From NCBI GenBank assembly GCA_021613535.1, contig CP075492.1, forward strand, positions 7,316,001 through 7,380,000: a stretch of 64,000 nt of DNA, in the 5' to 3' direction. Origin of the DNA: Adineta vaga. Lineage: Eukaryota > Animalia > Rotifera. The position numbers and the translations under genes were made by a program. Under the pieces are notes generated by a model. That model did no database searches. It was not told where the DNA came from and saw only the letters and a list, made by a program, of their open reading frames with translations. Positions 13,498 through 17,049 of this stretch are shown one piece after another (position 1 is the stretch's first letter; each line of letters opens with the position of its first letter).

Positions 13498-14502
13498 ATG
13501 TTTGACAATAACAAAATTATTGGCTTTGTTTTAACTTTATTCACTGTTGGTAATAGTTCGTTTGCATGTTTTGTATCATTAATGGTCTTTATTGTTAGTA
13601 TATATCATTTCTGTTTCAATCGTATCAATCGAGATGATAAAATAATCATTCTTCATTGTATAAATTTATACTTTTATATAATAATGTATACAATGCTGGT
13701 GACAATATTTCATACACAAACATTATTAGGTGATCTATATGGAAGTCATTTTCAAACTAGATCATGCATATTCTTAGGAAATGTTTTGATTGTTATTAGT
13801 TCGACTATCTACATGGCTTCGGTTTCACAAGTAAGCAGTCGTTTATGACGTAAAGATTTAAATTTTGTGTTCCATTTATAGGCTTTCTATCGGCTATTTC
13901 GTGTGGTTTATCCAAAATATCGTTGCTTACAACATTTTCGATTTTACATAATACTACCGTTTATTCAAATCATCGTATCAGTGATATTAGTTTTTCCACT
14001 TTTGCTTTGGAATGCGGTGATTTATTTACCGAGTGAACATTATTGTTTTGTATCATACACAGGTTTTCGCAGTATTTTATGGGCAGTATTTAGTATTTAT
14101 ATCATTCCAATTGCTTGTATATTTCTTATCTATATTCGTATAACTATATTTATTAAAAAAGCAAATAATCAAACGATAGTTATTCGACGTCGACAAGAAC
14201 GTGATGTACTCGCTATTCAACGTATACTTACTACTGTTGGTTTATTAGCTCTAGCTGGTGCTCCTGCAGCTTATTTCCTAGTACGATTGATAGTTACGGG
14301 ACAAATTCATCCATTAACATATCGTGTTGCATGGTTAGCAGCAAGTATTTCTATGGTAGGATTAAGTGTTACATTAATATTTTCTGTACCGCAATTGAAA
14401 AGTATTATTTTGAAGAATACAACAAAAAATCAAAAGTTACAATCATCAAATGATAGAACAGTGACTGAAATTGAAATGAAAAACATTTTAGTTGATGAAT
14501 GA
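13498..14502 (+). CDS. Rhodopsin-like orphan GPCR (intron 13831-13881)
   Basis: Seven hydrophobic segments, TM3 end QAFYRLFRVVYP, ECL2 YLPSEHYC, ICL3 RRQERDVLAIQRI. Start codon uncertain. Confidence 0.85.
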
Positions 14503-14808
14503 AATTGCTTGTTTTGTTAGATCAAAAAAAATTTTATTACAGTATTTTATGTCTAGTTGATAAACTGAATTTTTGAAAGTGAAAAAAAAATTATAATAAC
14601 GCAATAATGGTGTATGTATGTAGCAAATGACTCATTTCACGAGAGTAGAGAACGAAAGAAACAAACGTCCATGATTCGTCTAAGCATTCTACAATGTTAT
14701 TTTGCCAACACATATTTTTACATTTTGGATGTCATAACACTCTTTGATTGAGCAATTTTGTTCCCGTTAGTAAAACACAACATAATTCTCCTATTCAGAT
14801 ACAAAACC

Positions 14809-16522
14809 ATGACAAATCATGAAAACCAATTGATCGTTGAAAATGCTCTCGATGATGATAATAGTGTTGTTAGATTATCATCGAAAATGATGGATAAATT
14901 ACAATTCTTTTGTGGTGATGCCGTCAAGCTTAAAGGTAGAAAACGACGACAAACGGTTTGTATTGCACTTTCGGATGATTCCTGTTCAGATGATCATATA
15001 AGAATGAATAGTGTCATACAAAAGAATCTACGCGTACATGCTGGTAATACTATTACAATTCAAGAATATCCACGTGCTATCTATGGTACACGTATTCATG
15101 TTTTACCATTCAATGATACACTTTGTGATATTGCCGAGGATGTATTAAATGAAAATTTAAAATCCTATTTTTGTGATGCTTTTCGACCAGTATACATTGG
15201 TGATACATTCACTATTCGAATAGGAACGGATAAAGTTGAATTTAAAGTCATGCAAACAGATCCAAGTCCATGCTGTATTGTCGCGCCAGAAACAGTGATC
15301 GATTGTAAAGGTGAACCGATTCATTACATCGAAGAACAATATTTGAACAATGAAGTGGACTTTTATGATATCGGTGGTTATAAAGATATAAAGAAAAGTT
15401 TGCAAGAAAGTGTTCAAGGTATTTTGAAGTATCAGAATACTGAGTATTATTTTAAGTATGGTTTACTACCCTCAACAGGTATACTATTGTATGGTCCACC
15501 TGGTTGTGGTAAGTTCTTATTGTAATAGTTTCAAGAATTGATATTAACATTGACTTTTTCTTTTTATTAAGGAAAAACAATGTTAGCGAAAGCACTTGCT
15601 AATGAATGTGATATGAACTTGTTGATAATCAAAGGTCCAGAATTGGTTTGTGCATGGGGAAATGATCCTGAAACCAATTTGCGTGCAACATTTGACAAAG
15701 CTCGTCAAAGTGCACCTTGTATTTTACTTATTGATGAGCTTGATTATGTGTGTAAGTAAATGGAAGCTATATACTAAATCTCATTTGATTATCTAGTTGA
15801 GAATGAGTCCATGGATCGTCTTATCAATCAATTATTAACTGAGATTGATGGATTGAATGTTAAAACACAAGTGATTCTTATTGCCGCAACAAATCGACCT
15901 GAGTTATTTTATCAAACATTTCTTCGACCTGGTAAGAATTTTCATTGACTTCTATGATGACAATTGTTTGTATTATGATCTTCATAATTTATCTAGGTCG
16001 TTTTGATGAATTAGTATACGTTCCACTTCCTGATGAAGACTCTCGTGAAGCTATTTTGAATATCACATTACAACGATGCCATATAGCTGCAGATGTTGAT
16101 ATGAAGTCTTTGTCGAGAATGCAGCAAGGAGCAAGTGGTGCTGATATTGTGGAGTTTTGTCGTACAGTATGCAGAGCAGCTATTCGAGAAGCCATAGAAA
16201 AAGAATCTCAAATGGAACAATTAGATGCAGATATTGATTTGAATATTGAAATTCGACAAGATCATTTTGAACAAGCGTTAAAAACTTCTTCCCGTCTAAG
16301 AACAATACATTATGATATTCGTAAGTATGAAGTATTCGCTCGAACGTGGCAATCATCGCATACATACAATTTCTTATTCCCGACTTCTTCAGAAGCTCAC
16401 ATCAATAGTGAAGGTAATACAAACCAGTTTTACTTTTTCGTTCATATATTTATCTCCTTGAAATAGGGAGTGGTAAACCAGTATCAAATGTTTACGTTGA
16501 TGACGATGATCTGTATGGATAA
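14809..16522 (+). CDS. VCP/p97/CDC48 paralog with an N domain and a single D2-type AAA domain (5 exons; introns 15509-15571, 15752-15796, 15932-15996, 16414-16466)
   Basis: N domain (NQLIVENALDDDNSVVRLS...VEFKVMQTDPSPCCIVAPETVIDCKGEPI). Walker A GPPGCGKT, Walker B LLIDELD, AATNRP, LRPGRFD. C-terminus NVYVDDDDLYG with TAA at 16520-16522. Confidence 0.93.
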
Positions 16523-17049
16523 ATTTTAGGAAATAACAATTCTTTTTCATTGAATTTAAATCAGAACCGAACATTGTACATATATAAGCAAGAATAAATA
16601 TTGTAATTTTTTTTCATTACTAGCATGTATATCAAAACTAGATGAAGCGCTAGAAAGGCTTGCCAATGTGTGTAGGATGACTAACTTATAGGCTACCGGT
16701 GTCCGTTTCAACTTTTGCAAAGACTAAAAGTAGTACAACACTCATTAGAGTTCAGGTGTCTGAAATATTCTCTATTTTACTTCTTTTACTCTCGTTTAAT
16801 TTCTATGATCGATCACTTCGAATGATATTGTGTATATTGATGTTTCTCATAGCTGCAACTATGTATTTTCGTGTTAATAGTCTTATGAAAAAATACCAAT
16901 ATGAAACATTCTTTATCATAATGAAAGAATTAATTGTGTCTTTTATCAAAACGAAATTTTTCAGAATAATATTTCTCTTTCTAGTTTATTCTATATGCAT
17001 GTGTTTTATCTTTATTGACATAATATTTTTGAAAGCAATCGACGATAAC

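Follow-up and report, generated by a model that had tools for sequence, protein, structure and literature searches.

A five-exon gene that joins a Cdc48 N domain directly to D2

The window analysed here is a 64,000-nucleotide stretch of the genome of the bdelloid rotifer Adineta vaga (GenBank assembly GCA_021613535.1, contig CP075492.1, positions 7,316,001 to 7,380,000, forward strand). At window positions 14809-16522 (+) it carries a five-exon gene related to Cdc48/p97/VCP, with a coding sequence of 1488 nt and a product of 495 aa. Few eukaryotic machines are as conserved or as intensively studied as Cdc48/p97, a protein-extracting ATPase of the type II AAA+ class, and its layout, an N domain followed by two AAA rings (N-D1-D2), is treated as fixed. 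In the window gene D1 is missing from the DNA, and the breakpoint falls within the four codons D187-G190 (15367-15378). The four introns are all GT-AG and all phase 1, with sizes of 63, 45, 65 and 53 nt. The features of the gene are as follows.

14742..14808, + strand: 5' untranslated region (UTR), minimum extent; the RNA-like contig X9 record 10 begins at 14742.
14809..15508, + strand: exon 1 (aa 1-233 plus 1 nt), encoding the N domain, the N-D1 linker, the DIGG junction and the D2 start as far as GPPGCG.
15367..15378, + strand: junction codons D187-I-G-G190, the boundary between N-D1 linker and D2.
15509..15571, + strand: intron 1, 63 nt, phase 1, GT-AG, within the Walker A codons between GCG and K.
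15572..15751, + strand: exon 2, encoding the Walker A Lys-Thr, a degenerate pore loop 1 and Walker B D288-E289 (Pfam AAA).
About 15646-15666, + strand: degenerate pore loop 1, aa 259-265, in exon 2.
15733-15738, + strand: Walker B D288-E289, in exon 2.
15752..15796, + strand: intron 2, 45 nt, phase 1; joint 15751>15797 (GT..AG) in contigs X9 and X17.
15797..15931, + strand: exon 3, encoding a shortened pore-loop-2 region, sensor-1 N326 (15892-15894) and Arg finger R337 (15925-15927) (Pfam AAA).
15932..15996, + strand: intron 3, 65 nt, phase 1, between LRPG and R; joint in X9 and X17.
15997..16413, + strand: exon 4, encoding the second Arg finger R340 (15999-16001), the AAA lid and the D2 C-terminal helix (DIRKYEVF) (Pfam AAA_lid_3).
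16414..16466, + strand: intron 4, 53 nt, phase 1; joints in X9 and X17.
16467..16522, + strand: exon 5, encoding the tail that ends in D489-DDDLYG495 (16499-16519), plus the stop codon.
16523..16632, + strand: 3' UTR, minimum extent, with AATAAA at 16593-16598; contig X17 ends at 16632.

Position 14809 is the first in-frame ATG, and the ortholog in Adineta ricciae starts at the same position. At the other end, the AATAAA at 16593 is consistent with a transcript that ends at 16632. If intron 4 is left unspliced, the frame hits a stop and the tail is lost. The protein encoded by exon 1 is 100% identical to 'hypothetical protein I4U23_013034 [Adineta vaga]' (P0001). This public entry is only 295 aa long because the NCBI annotation reads through intron 2 (ending in …DELDYVCK and a stop). 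The spliced contigs described below back the 495-aa product, and the public 295-aa annotation is corrected here.

To assess support for the gene model, contigs from four public runs, each from a different study, were compared with positions 14500-16800 (2301 letters). DNA contigs X2 (2013) and X4 (2015), from two independent studies, run unbroken over 14500-16401 and across the junction with zero joints, which excludes an assembly collapse. Coverage by the RNA-like contigs X9 and X17, from two further studies, was limited to 14742-16632. The joints 15751>15797 and 15931>15997 were observed in both X9 and X17, and 16413>16467 was observed in X9; none of them was present in the DNA runs. In X17 the joint at intron 4 is placed 4 nt off because this contig represents the other allele, and at intron 1 the loose ends of X9 at 15509 and 15571 match the opposite exon. 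X9 record 13 also crosses the junction at 15367-15378. Both A. vaga alleles apparently are among the transcript contigs (X17 being the alternative allele at the 3' end), and both are intact. The gene is expressed and spliced at all four introns, and silence is excluded.

Pfam and structure searches were run exon by exon, and whole-protein steps used the A. ricciae ortholog (P0151). Pfam analysis revealed CDC48_N at aa 7-87 (E 2.4e-19) and CDC48_2 at aa 116-171 (E 3.4e-06), both above the curated cut-offs, followed by a single AAA domain (exons 2-3) and AAA_lid_3 (exon 4). The first two make up the double-psi barrel and beta-clam domain found at the N terminus of Cdc48. The protein therefore has one AAA domain and lid only, and not the two stacked rings by which Cdc48/p97 is recognized. 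Residues 3-190 align without a gap to residues 21-208 of human VCP, comprising the N domain and N-D1 linker (E about 1e-81), and from aa 182 on there is a second alignment to VCP 473-522, the start of D2. Exon 2 scored 67.7 bits against D2 and 40.7 bits against D1, and exon 4 scored 101.1 bits against VCP 638-778 and 33.1 bits against D1. The canonical N terminus is incomplete, with its first roughly 18 residues missing from the window protein.

Comparison with the canonical A. vaga paralog gave the same result on either side of the junction. The 22 aa to the left of DIGG matched the N-D1 linker (score of 47 versus 10), and the 44 aa to the right matched the D2 start (99 versus 47). Over the whole AAA module the scores were 663 for D2 and 324 for D1, with identities of 50% and 30%, respectively. 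A global alignment opened one clean gap of 273 residues, equivalent to the D1 module plus the D1-D2 linker. In a maximum-likelihood (ML) tree, the AAA module of every protein with this N-D2 layout fell inside D2, on a branch separated from D1 with support of 100/100. An AlphaFold2 model of the A. ricciae ortholog, built from an alignment of family members, gave predicted local distance difference test (pLDDT) values of 85-94 for the N domain and about 80-88 for the AAA module; the linker was weak (57-61) and the tail disordered (about 36).

A first-pass annotation of this locus, made from the sequence alone, had described an intact p97 with a single ring that arose by in-frame loss between two DIGG-type motifs. 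The peptides it quoted are all present where it had placed them, and its four introns do splice in frame without stops to give the 495-aa product. It had read a complete N domain and N-D1 linker as running directly into D2, which the alignments, the scores and the tree bear out. The p97 tail (DDDDLYG) and the D2 C-terminal region that it had reported are likewise present, the latter recognizable from the exon 4 scores. Its description of the product of the deletion, an N-D2 protein that keeps both cofactor-binding ends together with the Walker A/B, sensor-1 and Arg finger residues, stands as written.

The N-D2 family in bdelloid rotifers and its origin

Relatives of the window gene were sought by one exhaustive profile-free search, two single-protein word-index searches and one alignment-based search. 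In A. ricciae, the D1-less proteins P0151/P0272 are 491 aa long and 64% identical overall to the window protein. At the A. ricciae locus (L006), at least six neighbouring genes keep the order that they have in the window (5-22 kb), which makes the A. ricciae gene a positional ortholog. A D1-less gene with the same four introns was found in Rotaria sp. Silwood1 (P0157, with the rest of the gene on locus L008), and the same N-D2 junction was present in Adineta steineri P0021/P0269 and P0420. At least 10 distinct exon-1 open reading frames (ORFs) with this junction came from unlabelled metagenome/Logan contigs. Inspection of these sequences revealed a signature of the N-D2 clade, in which a single exon runs from the N-D1 linker through D(I/V)GG into the D2 start and stops at GPPGCG, where the intron follows. 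The signature was found in the window gene, A. ricciae, Rotaria, A. steineri and the metagenome ORFs. Frames are open in all N-D2 lineages found, with zero stops or frameshifts; the A. steineri N-D2 members have no DDLY tail.

In a quick tree of the exon-1 region, the window gene grouped with that of A. ricciae (support of 100), within a clade of 16 N-D2 sequences that included Rotaria and A. steineri P0021 (Shimodaira-Hasegawa approximate likelihood ratio test [SH-aLRT] of 95). A careful tree of the N domain only agreed on the core clade (98/95). By these sequence comparisons, the N-D2 family is older than the split between Adinetidae and Philodinidae (Adineta/Rotaria). This goes beyond the first-pass annotation, in that the sequences identify an old bdelloid gene family and not a private deletion. 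No D1-less form was found outside bdelloids among the labelled non-bdelloid matches in the lists examined, two fish entries excepted. These entries (P0022 and P0237) are about 90% identical to canonical VCP and look like annotation artefacts with skipped exons. The other labelled non-bdelloid matches in these lists, among them plants, protists, other animals and the acanthocephalan Pomphorhynchus, have D1 after DIGG.

The A. vaga genome also encodes canonical two-ring Cdc48 on C1 (P0333) and on C4, each of which is 49% identical to exon 1. A search with exon 1 revealed no second N-D2 copy in the A. vaga genome (100.8 Mb, six contigs, with the window on C3). We also noted that the canonical C1 gene (L004, G000:C1:6240019-6243159, minus strand) has an annotated end of …GGGWKSSK and a stop, and that the expected end, …NEDSDLYD and a stop, follows immediately downstream in the +1 frame. 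Either the assembly has a one-base frameshift here, or the PUB/PUL tail of the C1 copy is genuinely truncated. Divergent Cdc48 fragments of the N-D1 type were present as P0418, P0427/P0429, P0450 and P0461, of which P0450 is labelled Rotaria sordida and the others come from unlabelled metagenome contigs, and the expansion of Cdc48 in bdelloids may be wider than the N-D2 forms. Outside the rotifers, P0002 of Caenorhabditis angaria (880 aa) has two tandem N-D1 units and no D2, and is either truncated in the opposite way or a model in which tandem N-D1 genes were fused. The upstream neighbour of the window gene (window:13903-14502, +) is a multi-pass membrane, receptor-like ORF of a family with at least 148 matches on all six chromosomes, many of them on C3.

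The introns bear on the origin of the gene. Introns 1-3 lie at the canonical D2 codons and in the canonical phase (between GPPGCG and K, after DELDxx, and between LRPG and R), and these sites are common to the canonical genes of A. vaga and A. steineri and the N-D2 genes of A. ricciae and Rotaria. The gene is therefore a DNA-level duplicate and not a retrocopy, and a retrogene origin is ruled out by the same introns. No processed retrocopies of the window gene were found in the search of the A. vaga genome. Intron 4 lies at the same codon in A. vaga and Rotaria (L008:8202-8270) and is absent from A. ricciae (L006:9181-9638) and from the canonical gene, a distribution that suggests gain in the N-D2 lineage followed by loss in A. 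ricciae.

The two DIGG sites of canonical A. vaga Cdc48 are encoded by GAT ATT GGT GGT and GAT GTT GGT GGT, which are identical at 11/12 nt. An in-frame deletion between these short repeats would have taken the rest of exon 1, one or two introns, D1 and the D1-D2 linker. Recombination between identically placed Walker A introns of D1 and D2, as found in the C4 copy, was considered and rejected, because the 44 residues before Walker A are D2-like and place the breakpoint at DIGG. The intron pair itself is a feature of the canonical C4 copy (L002, G000:C4:6766108-6769788), which has an extra intron in the D1 Walker A codons (between GPPGTG and K) as the counterpart of the D2 one; this intron is absent from the C1 copy (L004).

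Four further A. steineri N-D2 proteins (P0155, P0169, P0204 and P0235) cluster with canonical A. steineri genes (92/91 and 93) and are about 70% identical to canonical D2. The gene for P0169 (L009:10001-11879, CAJNON010000440.1) lies 4.4 kb upstream of that for the 786-aa canonical P0356 (L009:16313-18957) on the same strand, and this tandem pair is 81-86% identical in nucleotide sequence. Exon 1 of P0169 runs uninterrupted from the N domain through DIGG to the D2 start. Both P0169 and P0155 have a Walker B of DD in place of DE and no DDLY tail. These proteins probably represent a second, younger N-D2 lineage, which would mean that D1 was excised at DIGG more than once; in A. steineri, a recent tandem duplication would have been followed by the same excision. 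An alternative for the tandem pair is that an old N-D2 copy was gene-converted by its canonical neighbour, and starred branches in the quick tree of the exon-1 region are compatible with a single origin of all N-D2 genes.

In order to determine how the gene is evolving, dN/dS (omega) was estimated as a range from the Nei-Gojobori (NG86) and ML methods. The comparison of A. vaga with A. ricciae, for which dS is near saturation, gave a dN of 0.22-0.24, a dS of 0.85-1.47 and an omega of 0.15-0.28. By half, omega was 0.18-0.33 for N and 0.15-0.25 for D2. Over the four runs there were 18 coding variants, of which 8 were synonymous and 10 nonsynonymous (pN/pS of 0.33), and none was disabling. Between the same two species the N-D2 protein is 64% identical and the canonical protein 95%, so that the N-D2 form has evolved about 7 times faster. 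Taken together, the sequence data identify an intact, selectively maintained Cdc48/p97 paralog. The first-pass annotation had named independent DNA across the junction, a transcript, N-D2 orthologs in other rotifers and dN/dS as checks on its deletion. All four came out in its favour: contigs X2 and X4 are unbroken across DIGG, the RNA-like X9 and X17 are spliced at all four introns, N-D2 genes are present in A. ricciae, Rotaria and A. steineri, and dN/dS against A. ricciae is well below 1.

Retained and altered residues and the proposed function

Both the window protein and its A. ricciae ortholog have the full set of residues for ATP binding and hydrolysis, namely Walker A (GPPGCGKT), Walker B (D288-E289), sensor-1 N326 and Arg fingers R337 and R340. 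Rotaria has two exceptions, a Walker A of GPSGCGKT and a Gln in place of the first Arg finger. The GxSGAD lid motif and the KYE(V/A)F C-terminal helix are retained in the window protein and its orthologs, and the C-terminal tail is DDDDLYG in A. vaga and A. ricciae and DDDDLYA in Rotaria. The WF pair of D2 pore loop 1 is gone in every member, being WG in A. vaga, RW in A. ricciae, SI in Rotaria and QS in A. steineri; in the younger A. steineri group it is LF or LM. The window gene and its A. ricciae ortholog have also lost 11 residues from pore loop 2.

Further inspection of the N domain revealed that its cleft is unchanged (D35, V38, F52, L72, Y110, Y138, R144, I175 and V176, with Y143 being F or Y). 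Tyr110, Tyr143 and loop 141-145 are contacts for UBX/UBXL, and p97 Leu804 and Tyr805 are key contacts for PUB/PUL (PMC5389986). Positions R95, P137, G156, M158, R159, R191 and L198 are substituted in the window protein. All of these but G156 are N-D1 interface sites, and that such positions are free to change fits the absence of D1. The same positions (R95, P137, M158, R159, R191 and L198) are mutated in multisystem proteinopathy 1 (MSP1) (PMC5131264).

On balance, we consider it probable that the protein, as the D1-excised paralog of a bdelloid family, binds partners in an ATP-dependent way without threading substrates, and that it modulates canonical Cdc48 or works in parallel with it. The single D2-type module would bind and probably hydrolyse ATP, given that it retains Walker A/B, sensor 1 and both Arg fingers. 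The N-domain cleft would still be open to UBX/UBXL/VIM/VBM partners, and possibly the SHP site too, and the Leu-Tyr tail would be available to PUB/PUL partners. Substrate threading is predicted to be lost because the D2 pore-loop aromatics are lost, the window gene and A. ricciae have a shorter pore loop 2, and the D1 pore is gone. The result would be an ATP-gated binder, acting either as a cofactor competitor or reservoir or as an alternative, non-unfolding platform. Three functions had been proposed for the protein at first pass: single-ring segregase, cofactor decoy and modulator of canonical p97. The first fares poorly on the unconserved D2 pore loops, and a segregase in its own right is unlikely, whereas the decoy or modulator is the role that we favour by inference.

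Several observations weigh against a non-threading partner-binding module. Hexamerisation of p97 is attributed mainly to D1, and a protein with D2 alone may therefore form no ring; indeed, ATP binding to D1 is said, in the title of a 2003 paper by Wang et al., to promote hexamerization. An isolated AAA module that lacks a neighbour's Arg finger would hydrolyse ATP poorly. A three-copy prediction for the D2 module of the A. ricciae ortholog returned a score of 0.00 ('no answer'), which, without controls, is evidence neither way. The A. vaga protein retains one pore-loop-1 Trp. R53 and R89, which are invariant in canonical Cdc48, are replaced clade-wide (R53 by Cys in the core clade, R89 by Gln in all members), and the range of partners may have shifted if these two residues help to bind cofactors. 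Of the positions at which canonical Cdc48 does not vary from sponge to fish, the window protein retains 55/89 in N and 107/190 in D2. With about 40% of the sponge-to-vertebrate invariant positions changed, the function may be far from Cdc48-like. Between A. ricciae P0151 and P0272, omega was about 1-1.7 in D2 and 0.13 in N, on small counts; the two differ at about 24 aa in D2 and tail and at 3-4 in N, and one tail is DDDLYE and the other DDDLYG. Finally, the 'RNA' status of X9 and X17 is a guessed label, with the exact intron-less joints as its sole support.

The strongest rival is an active single-ring segregase or unfoldase, in which an N-D2 hexamer would pull substrates through the D2 pore. 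The complete set of ATP hydrolysis residues, the Trp in A. vaga pore loop 1 and the purifying selection on the gene would all fit such an enzyme, and its N domain and tail could recruit the usual adaptors. However, the WF pair is unconserved (WG, RW, SI and QS) in the very loop that would grip the substrate, the second pore loop has lost 11 aa in the window gene and A. ricciae, and change in D2 between the A. ricciae copies is relaxed or diversifying. In canonical Cdc48 with Ufd1-Npl4, moreover, the D1 pore loops are needed for capture of the initiator ubiquitin and substrate and for unfolding (bioRxiv 10.1101/2021.10.21.465358), and that pore is absent here. We regard this reading as unlikely.

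It is quite improbable that the protein is a regulatory or poison subunit whose protomers insert into, or stack on, canonical hexamers through D2-D2 contacts and so tune their activity. Descent from the same D2, with the Arg fingers and C-terminal helix retained, would provide the contacts, and the A. steineri N-D2 copies that adjoin a canonical gene have the DE-to-DD change in Walker B expected of a brake. Against this, D2 of the window gene shares only about 50% identity with its canonical counterpart and has a very long branch in the tree, and a D1-less protomer would interrupt the D1 ring on which the cohesion of the hexamer depends.

A transcribed but functionless duplicate in decay would account for the roughly sevenfold faster evolution (64% versus 95%), for the retention of only 55-60% of canonical-invariant positions and for the lack of a second (ohnologous) copy in A. 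vaga. We consider it highly improbable in view of the open frames in every lineage, a dN/dS of 0.15-0.28, the conserved synteny, the catalytic motifs and tail retained across the Adineta/Rotaria split, and the intact state of both A. vaga alleles. An artefact of assembly or annotation, through collapse at the repeated DIGG or skipped exons, has a negligible chance of being correct: the DIGG-coding strings are near-identical and the fish entries P0022 and P0237 look like such artefacts, but the junction lies inside one exon and recurs in each of the four runs, all from different studies, and within single ORFs on many metagenome contigs, and its flanks are only about 50% identical to the C1/C4 canonical genes and so do not represent a collapse of those genes.

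A wider scenario can be put forward tentatively, to which we give less than an even chance. Spare Cdc48 genes of bdelloids may have been turned into single-module N-D2 proteins more than once, each time by a precise loss of D1 at the duplicated DIGG. The old lineage, to which the window gene belongs, may have been kept since before the Adineta/Rotaria split as an ATP-gated, non-unfolding cofactor binder, a decoy or hub that retunes the Cdc48 network, possibly tied to the desiccation and DNA repair lifestyle of these animals.

Comparison with known systems

In the literature searched, no report of a natural D1-less Cdc48 was found, and none on bdelloid Cdc48. The roles of the p97 rings have been worked out from engineered truncations and point mutants. 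The N-D2 family would serve as a natural deletion experiment, selected in several genera, that shows which parts of p97 depend on D1, and it offers a ready-made protein with which to study N-D2 assembly, ATP hydrolysis and the holding of cofactors without unfolding. It also suggests a simple route to new AAA+ architectures, by repeat-mediated in-frame excision between homologous motifs of tandem domains. Its interest is mainly for AAA+/p97 specialists, and it is restricted to one animal group.

Laboratory fragments of p97 are the closest parallel in form. ND1 (1e32 and 5dyi) and D2-only (3cf0 and 6g2v) constructs likewise are partial p97 proteins with a single AAA ring, and the D2 fragment aligns over the same residues. 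The D2-only entry 3cf0 has 14 chains, which we take to be non-hexameric packing. These fragments are engineered, and none has N joined directly to D2; the window gene, in contrast, is natural and selected.

Single-ring members of the classic AAA+ clade (PAN/Rpt, katanin and Vps4-like proteins), which were weaker matches of exon 4, also carry a partner-binding domain N-terminal to one AAA module. Their aromatic pore loops are conserved, and they do thread substrates. Unlike the window protein, they have unrelated N domains (OB/coiled coil or MIT) and do not descend from Cdc48 D2. The other bdelloid N-D2 genes, for their part, share with the window gene the D(I/V)GG junction, a D2-type start of L/M-E/K-D-V/I-K, the intron at GPPGCG and the loss of WF.

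Likeness to canonical Cdc48/p97/VCP, including the A. vaga C1 (P0333) and C4 copies, extends over CDC48_N and CDC48_2, the N-D1 linker, the D2 ATPase motifs, the lid, the C-terminal helix, the acidic Leu-Tyr tail and three D2 intron positions. The window protein differs in having no D1 and no D1-D2 linker (273 residues) and in lacking the first roughly 18 residues, as well as in its degenerate D2 pore-loop aromatics, short pore loop 2, substituted MSP1 positions and ~7 times faster evolution. Judged from these comparisons, it departs by architecture from Cdc48/p97 in two defining features, the stacked rings and the aromatic D2 pore loops, and by descent it is a Cdc48/p97 paralog.

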